From NCBI GenBank assembly GCA_964057225.1, contig OZ059895.1, positions 6,634,001-6,698,000 on the forward strand: a stretch of DNA of 64,000 nt, given 5' to 3'. Shown one piece after another: positions 9,055 through 35,141 of this stretch. The DNA comes from Auanema rhodensis (lineage: Eukaryota; Animalia; Nematoda). The notes below the pieces were generated by a model, which saw only the letters and a list, made by a program, of their open reading frames with translations, searched no databases and was not told the origin of the DNA. A program made the position numbers and the translations under genes. Positions within the stretch are counted from its first letter, which is position 1. The number at the start of each line of letters is the position of its first letter.

Positions 9055-12000
9055 GTACATACACTTGCCTATACTACTAGAGGATTGAACAATTTCATAT
9101 ATAAAGGATATATGAAAAAAGAAAACGCTTGAAAATGCACACAAGAAAACACTGCAGATTAGAAACTGACCTTCTCTTAAAGAAAGATGGATCACGCCAA
9201 TATGGCTCATATCGTTGCTGTTGTTGTTCTTGAGTGTTATTGTTGCCGTTAGCTGACGTGGGAGGAGGCGGCGGAGCTAACGGATTTCCGGAATATAGAG
9301 GTCCGTAGTTCGAAATAGAGGGAGATGATGGCGAGATACCACGTGGAGTTCCAGCCAAAATGGATTCAGTGCTGTTGCGAACAAATCTGTAAAGGAGCAG
9401 AAGCCATGCAAAGAACAAATAATATAAGCGTTGTGGGGTACACATAGGTGATCGAGCTAAGATATCTGTTTCGAGCAAACATATACAGTACAAGGAATTT
9501 ACAGATGCAGTAAGAAAGGAATCTAGAAACAGGATGGACAGAAATAAGAAACAGCTAACAGCTAACAACTGTAGACTAATGGCTTGTCTTTTGAGACATA
9601 TTAAGCCTTCCATTGAGCCTCATGATGGTTCAATAAGCCATTATCATGAAAACATAATGGGATGTCTTCGTATATATCACAACTGAATCCACACACAGGG
9701 CAATGATGACATAAAGAAATGAGGAATAGTGTCCATAGCAAACCACAGAGCGGCTCGGAAAGCAGTGTAGATTGCTGTATGCGGGCTAGTGAGACCATTG
9801 GGTGCTTAGCTTTTCCTTATATGTACATGGATCGAATTCTCAAGAGAAAAGAGAATGTGTGGGGGAGGAAAGTCTGGTAAAAATGGCAGGGTGAAGATGA
9901 GCAAAAAAGATGAATGAGCGATACAACGAATCATCTATTCGTTACGTGCCAGATATCTTCATGTCATCATATGGAATACGACACATGCTCTTCATGTAGG
10001 CATACACCCTTCATCAAGAACAAGATCTAAGTTTAAGCATGATATGCATATCTGGAATATATAAGAGCTGAATGACACTAGATAACATGTGTACTCAGTC
10101 ATTCTTCCAGCTTCATAGAGATGCTTGATAAAACATAACATCTTGAAAAAGGCAATTCATTAAGCTAAAAGCCAATAAAACGAAATTTAGACAGAAAATG
10201 TTTGAAATTAAAGAAGAAATCCTGTTAAGAAAAAACTTTACGTAAACATTGAAGTAGCTTTTTCTGTAGGAATTACATAATTTTTGAACAAAACAGCCCC
10301 ATTTTGGAAAAAGTAACTCTTTTTCTTCACAAAAAACGACGCACAATCTTATTCAAAGCATACTCTAAACAAAACTACACGGGAACTGACGATATTTACA
10401 AGTCGCGGACAATATGCAGAGATTCCATTTTCTGTAACTGCAATTGCAGGCTTGTCCAATGTGGGAATGTTTGCCAAAGACACCAGAATGGCAGTAACGT
10501 CTGTATGTTTCATGAGTTTGTATTATGCTCGACACAGAAGTGTGTTTTCAACAAATATGAAACGAAGCCTTTTTCGGTGACGTCAGAAACGATTATTCAC
10601 AGAAGGAACCAAAAAGTTGTATCAAGAACTATTGCTACTATCTAAGTGAGATTAATGGTATCTCACAGGTAAGTTATTCAAATTTAATTGGTCCCTTGGA
10701 ATGATTTATTTCACATCAGGCGTTAAATCATCAGCTTTTCGATGCCGGCGGCCACTTCAAGAAGCACATCTGGGAAGAACTTGTCTCGAACCACTTAAGA
10801 CTTTTCCAATTGCAGAACAAGCATAAACACGAATAATACAAGGAGAGGACAGGGAAGCAGTAGAGCAAGAAACAGGAAGACAATACGCTTATGAGTAGTG
10901 ATCTTTATGACCATCTGTATTAGGATGTGAGGTTGAACTCACGCTTGGGTTCAAGAAGGTGCGAAAAAGACAACTGTTTATCGAAAAACTAACCGTTTTT
11001 GATCCATTGAAGGCGTAGAGGTGGCCGAAGATCTTGATGACGATGATATCTTGGCCAAATCGTTAGCCATATCCGAAAAATTTCGAGCAACCTGTAAGAA
11101 AATATATAAAAAAATATTTCTACTGTTTCTTGAAAATAATTTAAAAATTCAATAATCAGGGAACCCATGCATTAAATCAGCGGCAAAAATTTGTATACAG
11201 TTGTATACAGACACACTCGAACGTTAACCGCAAAAAAGTTCGTAAAATTATATATACGTATTTGAGAGAAGTACATGGCATTTACAGGTTCAATGTTAAA
11301 GCAGTATGCTGGTATACATCGAAGGGATTAATCGGAGATGTTGTCTGACTGCGTGCATGAAATATCAATAGGAATCAATTTTTCGGCAGCATATAATATA
11401 GTGCGGAAAAGCAACTTCTTCATACCAAATAACTAGAAATGACAAGTGTTATCTCAAGTTTTCAATCCATCGTAGGGCCGGAGTTGTTATGTTGAGCAAA
11501 GCTAACGTTTAGGCAAAGGCTAAGGATGAATGAGTCGTTTACTACAGACATTGAAAACAGAATGAATTCAAAATCATGAGGAATTCTATGTGCATGTGTC
11601 ACGTGAGATGGTCAAAAATCATTTTTGCATTTGTCAACGTTATGAACGGTTTGTTGTATTAACCAACCGTTGTTTACAAATTCAACAACAAAATCGGGCT
11701 TTATGGATATGATATAAGAAAAGACGAAAGTTTCAACATGAATCATAAAGTTTCAGGTATTCATGTTTCATAAATACAGTTTAACGTTAAAAAATATCAG
11801 CTAGATTAACAACATAAAAGCAAATTAAAAAAAAAATTACCTGCGAAGTTGGACTGTTGGGACAGGCCATAGTAGTGGAATTCCCGTTACTCATTGGTGC
11901 TCCAGCCGGCTTTGGTGGCAGCGGAGGTGGTTGTCTGATAGGTCGTGGTGAATAGAAGGACGGTACATTGGTTGCCTGAAAGCCAGATAGTGTATAGTTG

Positions 12001-21778: not shown

Positions 21779-23489
21779 CAAATCAGAAAGACAAAGCTAG
21801 TAACATAGAACGCAATGTTAAGCTATGACACATCTGGATACGGATTTTAGAAGCAATGAATATGAACAAGGAAACAATGAAATCAAATGAAAATTGATGA
21901 CCAGACGTATGGAGCCAATTTATGGGTTCGAATTGTACATTAAAGACAGAATATGCCAAAGAAACGACATGTGATATTAGCCACATTTCGGCTCATGCGT
22001 ATATAGATTCCCTATGATCGGAAATCAAAACTGAAGATGCCAGTAATAAAACATGTTGAATGTATAAAAACAATAATTGTGGGATGATTATTGAATTTCT
22101 ACTTTTTAGTTAAACACAGTTATAAAAAAAGGTGCTGAGTACGGCAATATCATTGAAAAGAAGCGAATATGTAGAGAGAAGCCGACTTTGTGCCCAGCTC
22201 GTAAGCACTAACGCGTGAACGACTGACTACTCTGGATGTCATGACCACAAACAGCCAGCTTTACCCTGACCCATTATGTTAATGGCCATTGCATTGTTCT
22301 ATTATATATTTCAAACTAAAGGCAGACCACCCGTATTCATAACTCAGGTGGCTAGCATATGTGTTTGTGTTACTAGTAAGAAAACAATCAAAAATGACCA
22401 TTAAGGCCAGGAAATGGAATGCGATTAAGAAACATACTATCATCAGAAACAAAACAGGAATGATAACTGAATGTTCACGAATCTAAACAAACCCACCTAA
22501 ATCCAGAACTACTTCACCACTTCTATTAAATTTATATATAACCAAAAACTATTGCTAGCTTATATTATGCCAATCAATAATAATAAGCTTTGTGCCCGAG
22601 TTATTAATATTTCCCGCCACTTTTGAAAGCTAAATGAATATTACAAAACTGCTGACGTATATCTAGTGAGCATGAATCTAGTGTGCTCTGAATAATTAAT
22701 ACTATTATAATACATATAGTATAAATGCGCAAACGGTACTCGATATTTCAGAATTTTCAGTACTTAAAAAATTGATGATTTCACATAAAATATTCAAATT
22801 TTTCTCACCTGTTAATTACCAATAAAGAGGTTTAAAGGGGTAAACAAACTGGTGATATTAAGTAAACATACATTTTAGCTTAATCATTTTTTACCGTTCT
22901 TCCTCGTATTTCCTCAATTTTATCTATCTCATTGTAAAAACATAACGGTGTTTTTTTAACCGATAATTTGCTCAAATATAATACATACATAAGCGAAAAA
23001 GAGTTAATATTGAATGAAATCGCTTCAACAAGAGAGAAATCGATCTTAATAATTTTTTTAAGTTTTGAAATTGTTTTGTCAATCAATGAATTAAAATTTT
23101 AATGAACTGAAGATTTAGTCAAGTGTGTAATATATCCAGTAACATATATGTAAAGCAGATGATCATCTTATAATGTATTTAATAGAATAGATAATATTTC
23201 TTACGCAGACAAATTCTGCACGTCTAATAAGCCTTAAGATCATTTCTCCCAACTTAGCGACTGGTAGGACATATCTGTTTACATAGACTGAATGGGAAAA
23301 CGCATCATGAATCTGATACGAGGTTGTTTCTTTTAGAGTGAATTCTCTGTGCTAAATTAGAACAGAAGCTTTAAATAATTCAAGATATTGAGATGAAGAT
23401 ACTGTTTCTCTGTGAAACATAAACCTGGTTAAATTGACCTCCCAATCAGTAGTTTTACCTCTATAGCCATTTTTTCAATGATATTCATG

Positions 23490-23729
23490 AAAAAAGAGCC
23501 ATGTCCTGAGCAATGCCGAGAGAGAAACCAGTAGTGGACACCTGCTTTTGTGCTGTAAATGTCCGTCGTTAGTACCAAACGACTGCGTAGTGAATGACAC
23601 GCAGAGGCGCCTGCTACCCGGCCCAGACCCATCGACATTTGTTCCATATCGATTGCCTGTTATTCCCGTGTAGTTTCTATAGTGCGGTGGCTTCCGCTTT
23701 TCCAAGCCTTTACCAAGTAGGACCGGCAT
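23490..23729 (-). ncRNA. Candidate ~240-nt structured Pol III-like RNA, family unassigned
   Basis: 5'/3' closing helix, a second long-range helix and six internal hairpins. Four helices contain G-U pairs on the minus strand that would be C-A mismatches on the plus strand. T6 run directly after the closing helix; TTTAAAA about 25-30 nt upstream. Confidence 0.55.
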
Positions 23730-23741
23730 GAGTAAAAGCGA
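23728..23741 (+). CDS. unc-94: Alternative first coding exon of tropomodulin (UNC-94a-like)
   Basis: ATG AGT AAA AGC GA|gtaagt (consensus donor, phase 2). Joined to the 24370 acceptor it gives MSKSDYYSEEKTF, similar to C. elegans UNC-94a MSQAKTDYYSEEKTF as recalled. Confidence 0.65.
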
Positions 23742-24227
23742 GTAAGTTCTATTTTAAATTATTCTCAAGATACCCACCGAGCCAAATATTTTGGCTTCCA
23801 ACATTGGAATCACCTATGGCGTGAACAACGCTACTCACTATTTGAAGTACACGTCCCGAAACATATGCCTCGTTATTCATACTTTTATTTGCAAATAGTT
23901 AATGCTTAGTGTCTTTCTGACTTTTCCTCTTTTTCGTCGTTCTTTGTTTAAAAATACAGTTCGACTCCACAGTATAGTAAGGGAAGTATTTAAGTGTTTG
24001 TCGAATGTTTGCTCTTCTTGCTGCGCGGCCGCACAGTCCATGTGAGTTGCGCCAATCGACCTCCTCCTACCCTCCTTCACTGTCTTTTCTCCTAATCTAT
24101 ATCCCAAGCCCATCATATACACACTGTCTGTCTGACTTTCCTCATCATTCAATTTTCTTTAATTTTGTCTTTAATTGCTGCAAAAAAAAAGTGAATAAGA
24201 CAAAAATTACTGAGATCTGTATTAAAA

Positions 24228-26583
24228 ATGGAGACTGAGCAGCCTATTGAGTCCACTCCCATGTTTCCGCGTTCGCGCATATATCATAGGTACAAAATGA
24301 AATAAATTTGTAGTTTAATACCAAAATACCGTTTGAATTATTTTTATTTAGTTTTATTTTAATTTTCAGCTATTATTCGGAAGAAAAAACATTCAGTGCT
24401 GCTTCATCCACACAGAAGGGTGCCGGTCTTCCACCAGCCAAAGTTTACGGGGGTAGAAAAGTGAGTTATTTTGAAAATTTAGTGTTTTTTAATATTCCCG
24501 CTCATTTCTAGGATGTAGATGACGATATTGAGAGCTTACTGGCAAAGTTGAGTCCTGAAGAATTAGAGGATCTAAACAATGACTTTGATCCTGACGTGAG
24601 TTCATGATCTTTCATTCATTCTTATGTTATTGTCATTCAATTCTTCATTTTTGTTTTCTTGGTGATTCGACGTGACTTTGTGTGAGCTGATGTTTTTCAA
24701 TTGTTTCTAAATCTTCTACCCTAGCTATTCTGTTTGAAAGAGAGGGGGCAGTTTCAAATATTGCTCTTAATTGTGAAAAGTGAAACTTAAAAACAGCATG
24801 AAAGAAAAGTTGTATGCTAACATGTTGTGGTACTCATCTATCGGTGCGCATTTTTTTGTTTAATATATTCGCAAAGCTTCAAATCAATATATAAGCGTTG
24901 TGATCATATGACGATAAGAGCCAGTGTACATACGGTAAATACAGAGCTGCTGCTGCGATCAAACGAAAATACATGAAACTTGAGATGAACTGTCCGTAGA
25001 TGGAGTTCTAGTGAATGTGAACTTCAGTCTTTGAGAATTATTGATATTTTTCCATAATGTCAGAAAAATAAATTACTTAACGAATAAAGAACGATTAGTT
25101 AAGACGTCTTCATTATACTGTTTGTTTCAGAACTCTATGCTTCCTCCTTCTCAACGTTGCCGTGATCAAACAACTAAAGCTCCGACGGGTCCGTTCAAAA
25201 GGGAGAATCTGTTAAAGTTTTTGGAAGAACAAGCAAAGAGTGAAAAAGACTGGGAAGATGTCATGCCATATTCTCCAGGTGTTAAAAGAGGTTTAAAAAA
25301 GCTTTTGCTAGGTTTGTTTATCGTTTTGTTTCAGGAAAAGTTTTCGAACAAGATGACGATATGGTCGATGAAAACGATGAAAAGGGAAAAGGCGGATTGG
25401 GTGGAATGGAAATGCCAATTGAATTAGATATTGATGATGAAGATGAAGACGAGGATGGTCTGGATCAAGCTCTTGATGGGGCTCCTGAAAGAGACCTTGT
25501 TGACTTGGCTGGAATCTTAGGTGAGTTTCTTTTATTTATATTTTCACACTTCAATTTTTTTCAGGAATGCACAACATTCTTAATCAACCCCAATACTATA
25601 ATGCATTGAAAGGCAAACGACAAGATGAATCTACAGGAACAACGTTTAGGTTTGTATATGCATGAACCTTTTTTTTAGCATCATTTAATATTATACTATT
25701 GTTTTAGTGGTATTATACGTGGATATGAACCTAAAATTATTCCCGACGAGCCGGAAAATGAAACTAATGTGGATGATTGTATCGAGTTTGTTTTTGAAGT
25801 TACCTTTCATCAAATATCTTTCTGAAATTATAGACGTTTACAATCTGATGATGACTCTCTCACCGAAGTAAACATTAATAACATGAAGCGAGTTTCTAAA
25901 GTAAGTCTTTTTTTGTGTTTTTATCGCAAGCTAATTGTTTATCAATTCAGGAGAGAATTCGAACTCTTATTTCTGCTGCTTGTAACAGCAAACACATTAC
26001 GAAGCTGACAATGGCCAATACGGCGATCTCAGATAGTGAAGCTAGGGTTAGTGTTTTTCTTCAACACAAATATTTGTTTTTTTTTTCTTGAATTATATAC
26101 AAAACAAAACATTGTTTTCTTACAGGGATTAGTAGAATTGTTAGAGGTGTCACCGTCCTTAAAGGTTCTTAATGTAGAGTCAAACTTCTTGACTCCCGAA
26201 TTATTAGCAAAATTATTAAGAGCTACATTAACTACTCAAAGTTTAATCGAATTTCATGCTGAGAACCAGGTTCGTCGCATTAGTTTAAATAATTTAAAAG
26301 CTATGACTTACAGCGGCAAACTGTGCTGGGTAATCAAATAGAAATGGATATGATGATGTCAGTAGAAGAGAATGATTCCCTGCTACGTGTTGGCGTGGCA
26401 TTCCAATCTATGGAAGCTCGACATCGAGTTTCAGAAGCTCTTGAAAGGAATTATGAACGACGTAAGTTTTTCAACTAAAATTTTCATTGAATTCGAGAAG
26501 ATTTAAAAATATTTTTCATGAACACTGTTAATATGTCTTTTTCAGTGCGTTTGAAACGTCTCGGAAAGCTTACTGAAGCGTAA
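24228..26583 (+). CDS. unc-94: Tropomodulin
   Basis: METEQPIESTPMFPRSRIYHSYYSEEKTF..LSPEELEDLNNDFDPD|NSMLPPSQRCRDQTTKAPTGPFKRENLLKFL..APERDLVDLAGIL; LRR part LKVLNVESNFLTPELLAKLLRA; ends RLKRLGKLTEA*. Confidence 0.95.
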
Positions 26584-33477: not shown

Positions 33478-34104
33478 ATCCCAAAACTTTTTCATCAAAA
33501 TCTTGAATATCACCCTCCTTCAAACTTGGTCATCATTCAATTGAAACACAATCTCTGTTTTATTCCATTTTTATTAGTTTTATTAGGGTTTGAACTATCT
33601 GATTCTCTTACCTATATAACGATCTCCTTCAGTTCCCTGCTCCGCCAATCCAAACGCAAGAAGGGAAAGATCGTTTGATTTACTTCCTCTATATCTCAAA
33701 ATTACCCTGTTCAGATTGTGTTGATCAAGCCCTTATTGCAAACAATCAAATATACCATGTTAAATTCTTATTTTTTTGAATTTCTCTATGATGTTGCCAC
33801 CCTTGTCGTTTGGCTGTTTAAACTACTTCATCCAAATATGTATTTGGCTGTGCATGCTTGCTATTCCTTTTCATGTCGATTGATTGTCTTATCCATTTGC
33901 GGAGCTGTTTGATCTGTTTTATGTCATCATGTTGGTTTTAACATTTTTCGTCATCCTTGTTCTTTGTTATCATCATTGTTATCACCTACTGGTTCGAGTA
34001 GAAATGAATTGTTGATGTTTCTGCTAAAAACTTTATTTTAATAAATAAAATTATATATATTCACGTGCTTTTTGATTATGATCTTTATTTGATCTTGTGT
34101 ACCA

Positions 34105-34177
34105 GCCCGGTTAGCTCAGTCGGTAGAGCACCAGACTCTTAATCTGGCTGTCGCGGGTTCGAGCCCCGCATCGGGCT
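34105..34177 (+). tRNA. tRNA-Lys (CTT)
   Basis: GCCCGGTTAGCTCAGTCGGTAGAGCACCAGACT-CTT-AATCTGG..GGTTCGAGCCC..CGGGCT; full cloverleaf followed by a T-run. Confidence 0.97.
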
Positions 34178-35069
34178 TTGAATTTTTATGAAAAAAATTT
34201 CGGGAAGAACGCAATAAAAGAAAGTTAACAATAAATTTACTGAAAAAAATGTTTTTGAATTATGAACACTGATTTTGAATATCAAATAACATCTGATTTG
34301 AGATTCTCATTCAACTTGAAACTGTTTAACATGTCCCGTAAATGATAATGTAAATATTTCAAATAACTTATCCATGGTTGAACAGAGTACTGTTTTTTGA
34401 AGTCTGATGTGAAAATAAAGCTCATATGTATTTATCATAAATATTTATTAATGAACATTGCCTTTAACTCCTCGGTAGCATTCCCAGTATTTGAAGGTAC
34501 GCAGGGATTTCATTAACTAACTATAGTTTACTAACTTTTTGTAAAGTCTATTTGGGGTTACCCGATTAGACCATCAGAGAAAAAAGATTATTTTCTCGGA
34601 ACGATGGATTTGTTATTTGAAGTGTTAAACCAATTTCAAATGATTCTGTAGTTTCTCATATCATATGTTGTCAACGCCAATTTTTTTATTAAAACCTATA
34701 CAATATACGGCGAAGGTATCTACTTGCTCTCAGTATCCTTTTTAATATATCTTTTCACTCAATGTGATAGCATACGGTTTAACGTTTATGCATATTTTTT
34801 GGATAGCCTGTCCGGGGTACACCGGATGGGTGATATGATGGAAAATTGTTAGCTTTTCTTAGCTTCAATAAATTGGAAATTAGATATTTCTTATTTTTAT
34901 CTTACTAATTGTGAAATCTTATATTATTAATTTGTATAAAAGTTAGAACAATCATTTCCACTTTTTAAAATTACGTTATAAAAAATTCATAATTGATTCA
35001 AATGTTTTTCGAAATGATTTAGAGGTGTAATAGCATAACATAATATCCTAACAAAACCTCGGAATCGTG

Positions 35070-35141
35070 TCCTCGGTAGTATAGTGGTGAGTATCCGCGT
35101 CTGTCACATGCGAGACCCGGGTTCAATTCCCGGCCGGGGAG
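35070..35141 (+). tRNA. tRNA-Asp (GTC)
   Basis: TCCTCGGTAGTATAGTGGTGAGTATCCGCGTCT-GTC-ACATGCG..GGTTCAATTCCCGGCCGGGGAG, followed by a T-run. Confidence 0.97.

Follow-up and report, generated by a model that had tools for sequence, protein, structure and literature searches.

A strongly constrained element with a minus-strand-specific fold at the start of the tropomodulin gene unc-94a in Auanema

Results and discussion

The unc-94a gene and its mRNA at the locus

The window studied here, meaning the whole 64,000-nt stretch of Auanema rhodensis DNA, carries on its plus strand a tropomodulin gene (unc-94), which was traced by exon-by-exon translation and by public RNA contigs. Run X1 matches the window at 100% identity, and one of its contigs, which is spliced, joins 23607-23741, 24373-24460, 24512-24595, 25131-25288 and later exons, with the intron 1 donor GTAAGTT at 23742 (Table 1). 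The coding part of exon 1 (23728-23741) is in frame with exon 2 and gives the N-terminus MSKSDYY, of a form common to many nematode tropomodulins. All four same-species runs contain the same 48% of the sampled words, and therefore the mRNA contig end near 23607 is reproducible. As to the protein family, two alternative N-termini are kept across clades III-V in the nematode tropomodulins (P0012, P0163, P0166, P0168 and others): an a-type, MS[KR][ST]DYY, for which exon 1 supplies just five codons, and a b-type, ...PMFPRS[RQ][IL]YH.

A first-pass annotation of this DNA had proposed a structured RNA of about 240 nt, antisense to the unc-94a start. Its placement is borne out. Since the unc-94a ATG lies at 23728, the proposed RNA 5' end (23727) abuts the complement of the start codon, and positions 1-121 at least of the candidate RNA are antisense to the unc-94a 5'UTR in the X1 contig. 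The same stretch holds a 45-aa plus-strand ORF (23594-23731), whose stop codon shares the sequence ATGA with the unc-94a ATG. This ORF begins with an ATG placed 13 nt before the mapped end of the mRNA contig, and no upstream ATG is present in the 5'UTR as mapped (23607-23727).

Table 1. Coordinates of the features around the unc-94a start, with their counterparts in the A. melissensis locus L001
Feature	Positions	Strand	Basis and remarks
Candidate PSE, GC-richer block GGCTCGGTGGG	23773-23783	-	-56 to -46 of the proposed start; without L001 counterpart
TATA-like TTTAAAA	23752-23758	-	-31 to -25 of the proposed start; TTGAAAT in L001
unc-94a start codon	23728-23730	+	ATGAGTAAAAGCGAGTAAG, also in L001 at 9523
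unc-94a exon 1 in spliced RNA contig	23607-23741	+	X1 contig; 121-nt 5'UTR and ATG AGT AAA AGC GA
Proposed 5' leader, including 5' arm GCCGGTCCT (23727-23719)	23701-23727	-	78% identity to L001
Ultraconserved structured core: GCGG/CCGC hairpin and multiloop closed by AGAAACUA/UGGUUUCU	23520-23700	-	L001 identity and minus-strand fold
Proposed 3' tail: 3' arm AGGACATGGC (23507-23498) and T6 run (23495-23490)	23490-23519	-	38% identity in L001 over 23494-23519

A fold specific to the minus strand

Read on the minus strand, 23727-23490 runs from GCCGGTCCT to AGGACATGGCTC and then into the T6 run, and all of the helices named by the annotation, the terminal stem as well as the internal ones, are present in it. 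The 3' arm of the terminal stem is followed by TC and then directly by T6. Inside this stem, AGAAACTA (23678-23671) pairs with TGGTTTCT (23530-23523), and ATCGATAT/ATGTCGAT, CTGCGT/ACGCAG, GTCGTT/AACGAC, GGACATTT/AGGTGTCC and GCGG/CCGC are also found. The multiloop that had been drawn from these helices stands as far as their existence is concerned and is ambiguous in part, as GTCTG has two CAGGC copies as alternative partners, and the MFE structure has CGTTTG/CAGGCG where GTCGTT/AACGAC had been proposed.

On the whole, the compact folding of the minus strand alone is confirmed. The 234-nt minus strand reaches -80.8 kcal/mol with a z of -3.28 (1 of 200 shuffles as good), and the same stretch has a z of +0.48 on the plus strand. 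For the 181-nt core the minus strand gives -61.8 kcal/mol and a z of -4.14, a value equalled by none of 200 dinucleotide shuffles, vs -0.14 on the plus strand; its MFE structure is identical with the centroid and accounts for 23% of the ensemble. The mRNA exon 23607-23741, folded as plus strand, has a z of +0.40. This strand asymmetry arises because 9 of the 55 pairs in the core fold are G-U, which turn into C-A mismatches on the other strand, in line with the earlier argument from G-U pairs in favour of the minus strand. The predicted 3' end of the 234-nt fold is not formed by a terminal hairpin.

Conservation of the core in Auanema melissensis

Relatives of the tropomodulin were searched with one exon of the window, and the full-length public relatives were then used. 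The closest one to the protein of the window is that of Auanema sp. JU1783 (P0166), a strain of A. melissensis with the assembly GCA_943334845 (PMC9984802). The unc-94 region of A. melissensis (L001) was taken as the comparison locus, and the identities of regions given here come from its global alignment to the window. In L001 the element is located at 9304-9523 on the minus strand in the same placement, directly adjoining the start-codon sequence.

The best-conserved stretch of the entire unc-94 locus is the 181-nt core, which shows 98.9% identity to L001, with 2 substitutions and one 2-nt indel, vs 76-95% for the unc-94 coding exons, about 45% for introns, and about 32-54% for introns and flanks taken together in the same alignment. 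One of the two substitutions, at 23622 (G>C on the minus strand), is stem-adjacent and gives one extra G-C pair in L001, and the other, at 23691, falls in a hairpin loop; loops and stems alike are nearly invariant between the two Auanema species. The conserved span corresponds to about positions 28-208 of the proposed RNA, and to no more than that. In the 5' leader, L001 has a 9-nt insertion together with G1>A and C8>U, its version of the 5' arm being ACCGGTTCT.

The footprint of the conservation is that of the folded domain and differs from that of the mRNA exon. Upstream, it continues for 87 nt past the mRNA contig end, which is situated mid-core, and it decays across the 27 nt adjoining the unc-94a ATG, the least conserved part of the 5'UTR. 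Comparison of the two genomes indicates that the core is under very strong purifying selection. Compensatory changes could be looked for in two full-length sequences with 2 core substitutions and in a third, L007 (see below), which is partial and marginal; because both full-length sequences are nearly identical, they provide no covariation evidence.

Distribution of the element in other nematodes

A part of the element is identified in a third rhabditid, represented by L007, a Logan transcript contig of the unc-94a mRNA (protein P0163), with a tropomodulin at 74% identity to the A. melissensis one. The 5'UTR of this contig (102 nt) includes ATATCGATCGCCTGGTTTTCCCGTGTAGTT, which corresponds on the plus strand to core positions about 52-82 and was found by nhmmer with an E of 0.012; the covariance-model hit is marginal and truncated. 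The shared core part, ACUACACGGGAA.A.CAGGC.AUCGAUAU, occupies the same unc-94a position, with most differences in predicted loops, and the hairpin ATCGATAT/ATGTCGAT is not preserved cleanly in it. The start of the L007 contig is roughly homologous to the 5' end of the X1 mRNA contig, and in this species too the element belongs to the plus-strand mRNA. The core segment in L007 shows that the element predates the genus Auanema.

Outside these species, blastn, nhmmer --max and the covariance model detect no homolog within ±10 kb of unc-94 in C. remanei, C. bovis, Diploscapter pachys and Dictyocaulus viviparus. The comparison of unc-94 orthologues suggested by the annotation has therefore given a match in A. 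melissensis and a partial one in L007, and none in the other four loci. The a-type ATG exon is recognisable in Diploscapter and Dictyocaulus, and the sequence upstream of it is unrelated and of low complexity. In these two loci a GTT/GAC-type trinucleotide-rich tract is observed just upstream of the unc-94a ATG (L004 8620-8700 and L005 9900-9960, respectively). The short genomic contigs L008 and L009 and the transcript L006 either do not reach the element or do not contain it, and exact-pattern scans of JGI metagenome contigs gave no match to the core motifs. Within the 64-kb window there are no further copies, so the element is not a repeat or transposon relic here. Overall, the core is a real, strongly constrained and lineage-restricted element.

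Expression over the element

The RNA data consist of unstranded contigs, probably from poly(A)+ libraries, which would not retain a small discrete RNA. In the species of the window, runs X1-X4 contain only 23607-23741 of the element, and this part is found within the spliced unc-94a mRNA. Reads confined to the plus-strand 5'UTR had been named in advance as speaking against the proposed RNA; four runs show this pattern, and they do so in part, being unstranded and probably poly(A)+ contigs. The contigs that cover the core in X5 and X9, two A. melissensis-like runs, stop exactly at the exon 1 boundary (23741) and run 282-665 nt past the core into unlike sequence. The depth of these contigs is 13.9 and 8.0 in the two runs, only about 1.5 times that of the intron-containing contigs (8.7 and 5.2), while a downstream exon has 71-85. 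There is accordingly no sign of an abundant discrete small RNA over the core in the unstranded, probably poly(A)+ contigs of X5 and X9.

Signals proposed for transcription by Pol III

Type-3 Pol III genes carry a PSE between about -65 and -45, a TATA box around -30 to -25, and an oligo-T run at the mature 3' end. The TTTAAAA, the GC-richer block and the T-run that the annotation took for such signals are all present in the window at the places it gave. The sister species does not keep them. In L001 the PSE-like block cannot be aligned, and of the T6 run only TT is left (CTCTTCATGAAT), with a T4 instead about 17 nt past the core, i.e. between the core and the would-be 3' arm. This arm of the closing stem is itself replaced by unrelated sequence. 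Ranked among the possible partners of the 5' end, the closing stem of the window comes second, at -13.8 kcal/mol, and the best replacement pairing in L001 reaches -8.5 kcal/mol and ranks seventh within 800 nt. The 5' 16-mer pairs best, in the window as in L001, with an internal conserved segment around CCGGGUAG. Moreover, T6 and TTTAAAA occur 1.8 and 0.5 times per kb and strand in the AT-rich window, respectively, which makes them no more than expected by chance, and runs of T4 or longer occur 11.7 times per kb and strand.

The type-3 Pol III look therefore belongs to one genome, as L001 has lost or altered all four features, from PSE-like block and TATA-like box to T6 run and closing stem. 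Two claims of the annotation are not supported on these grounds. One is the PSE and TATA promoter, since block and box are not kept in A. melissensis and the motif is common by chance, and the other is the unit of about 240 nt with its closing stem, of which only the 181-nt core is kept while the 3' arm and T6 are lost. Rather than the full 240-nt model, the functional unit is most likely this core, about 181 nt long. In general, TATA-like boxes, T-runs and terminal stems argue only weakly for a Pol III gene when they come from one AT-rich genome alone.

Known RNA classes and coding readings

The Rfam search proposed for the element returns no known family, neither at the gathering score in the window and L001 nor at E<=10 over 23300-24000; two distant tRNAs and two junk hits are all that these searches gave. 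The absence of the hallmarks of RNase P, MRP, Sm and telomerase RNAs, as noticed earlier by eye, is also confirmed by motif and Rfam searches. 7SK has its HEXIM site, formed by paired GAUC motifs, in a 5' hairpin and ends in a 3' terminal hairpin with a U-tail behind it; the RNA proposed here has no GAUC, does not end in a terminal hairpin, and matches neither RF00100 nor RF01052 at E<=10. In RNase P and MRP, CR-I and CR-V form the P4 pseudoknot, and there is a P3 domain; both were rejected, with no Rfam match at E<=10 and no visible pair of the GUCCCC/GGGGCU or the GGUCUGAGA/UCAGAC type. Nematode telomerase RNA has a template complementary to at least 1.2 TTAGGC repeats, and no permutation of the GCCTAA repeat of at least 7 nt is present on either strand of 23400-23800. 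An snRNA or a box C/D snoRNA was rejected too, as there is no Sm site and no C (UGAUGA) or D (CUGA) box.

The nematode sbRNA / Y RNA and other C. elegans intermediate-size ncRNAs are small, structured RNAs restricted to nematodes, with upstream-motif promoters, and the element would resemble them in these respects. They are much shorter, however, at about 70-140 nt, and their terminal stem and defined motifs are not found here.

Protein-coding readings fare no better. The ORFs across the element have no homologs, three of them were without a Pfam match, and the 84-aa ORF on the minus strand loses its ATG and its frame in L001 and has no match among miscalled 'proteins' in related assemblies. 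A link to the 29-nt palindrome that serves as motif of programmed DNA elimination in Auanema (bioRxiv 10.64898/2026.08.27.747507) was rejected, the two being unrelated. The literature search gave nothing relevant on an ncRNA at unc-94 / C06A5.

Interpretation of the core

What has been observed is a conserved core with a fold on one strand, an mRNA from the plus strand, and no match to a known family. Since the extreme selection coincides with a fold of one strand, a structured RNA from the minus strand is the best single explanation, and we give a probability of about 0.5 to the core being a structured ncRNA or RNA domain read from this strand. We infer the existence of the minus transcript, and what is said of its ends, its polymerase and its function is inferred likewise. 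Such an RNA would consist of a small hairpin and a multi-helix junction with many G-U pairs, and its whole surface may be in use, for example as a protein-bound scaffold, as suggested by loops and stems being conserved alike. The same DNA serves on the plus strand as promoter-proximal region and 5'UTR of unc-94a. The mRNA 5' end at about 23607 is mid-core, which would make the two transcription units overlap in a head-to-head arrangement. The constraint may be partly dual, acting on both strands, and it is possible that this would help to explain an identity above that of the coding exons.

As for its origin, the minus-strand RNA could be made by Pol II antisense transcription from a conserved block in intron 1 (described below) or from an unrecognised internal promoter, either being at least as likely as a type-3 Pol III promoter. 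Cis-natural or promoter-associated antisense transcripts are usually poorly conserved and unstructured. The element would be like them in overlapping the unc-94a 5'UTR head to head with full complementarity up to the AUG, and is unlike them in exceeding the coding exons in conservation and in having a well-defined fold. One may go further and regard the core, tentatively, as the gene body of an undescribed family of small structured RNP RNAs found only in the Auanema clade of rhabditids, whose DNA would have been co-opted as promoter and 5'UTR of the muscle isoform unc-94a, so that both strands are constrained and the expression of the two products is coupled.

The strongest of the competing explanations, which we nevertheless consider doubtful, places the function in the DNA or on the plus strand: the core would be the unc-94a core promoter and 5'UTR (about -87 to +94 of the TSS), constrained for transcription-factor, initiation or translational control, with the minus-strand fold incidental. 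A promoter/5'UTR element would also be centred on the unc-94a TSS, as the core is, and this speaks against a minus-strand RNA. The mRNA contig begins at 23607 in 4 of 4 same-species runs, roughly at the core centre, the L007 transcript begins at the homologous place with the conserved segment in its 5'UTR, and the public contigs, unstranded and probably poly(A)+, show no minus-strand transcript. However, an identity of 98.9% is far above that of the coding exons and of the promoter-like block of unc-94b (80-90%, with indels), and a structure signal is obtained on the minus strand and none on the plus strand. Besides, the 27 nt closest to the ATG are the least conserved of the 5'UTR, and the unc-94a start in Diploscapter and Dictyocaulus does without such an element.

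An autonomous type-3 Pol III RNA of about 235-240 nt, starting at G23727, with a PSE and a TATA box, a stem of its 5' and 3' ends and a T6 end, is improbable, because no diagnostic feature survives the comparison with the sister species. Its appeal lies in the window, where TTTAAAA, a purine start, the closing stem and T6 come together, and in a size (about 200-240 nt) and a compact fold like those of Pol III small RNAs such as U6, 7SK, RNase MRP and Y RNA. The likeness in purine start, A/T-rich box near -30 and oligo-T run holds in the window only: all four diagnostic features are unkept in A. melissensis despite a core identity of 99%, the motifs are common by chance in AT-rich DNA, and the T4 of L001 comes between the core and the would-be 3' arm. 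Unlike the type-3 genes, the element has neither hallmarks nor an Rfam match, and the proposed gene would overlap the first exon and 5'UTR of a protein-coding gene, its promoter lying inside intron 1 and exon 1 of unc-94a.

A highly divergent housekeeping RNA of a known class (7SK, RNase MRP or P, Y/sbRNA, telomerase RNA or snoRNA) is very improbable: size, GC-richness and extreme conservation would fit, and 7SK and MRP are hard to detect in invertebrates (PMC2770079), but Rfam returns nothing up to E<=10, the GAUC motif, the Sm site, the C/D boxes and the TTAGGC template are all lacking, and the other four rhabditid or strongylid loci have no homolog at or near unc-94.

Should the minus-strand RNA exist, it would represent a new structured RNA family under near-absolute sequence constraint, in a genus used for studies of sex determination and programmed DNA elimination, and one DNA segment would be both an RNA gene and the promoter/5'UTR of a conserved muscle gene. 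If the element acts as DNA or on the plus strand instead, it would be an unusually long ultraconserved promoter and 5'UTR in a fast-evolving nematode genome, which is uncommon and easily tested.

Other features of the locus

A second conserved non-coding block is found in unc-94a intron 1 at 23875-24045, with 80-90% identity, including indels, to L001 ~9660-9830. The alternative unc-94b first exon (about 24240-24300) lies downstream of this block, which is probably the promoter or enhancer of unc-94b; it could also be the promoter of an antisense transcript running into the core. Another intronic block, 24893-24950, shows 94% identity to L001 10710-10769 and has a GATAAG motif, and is likely an intronic enhancer. 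In addition, the sole Rfam matches of the window are two tRNA genes on the plus strand, tRNA-Lys(CTT) at 34104-34178 and tRNA-Asp(GTC) at 35070-35141.
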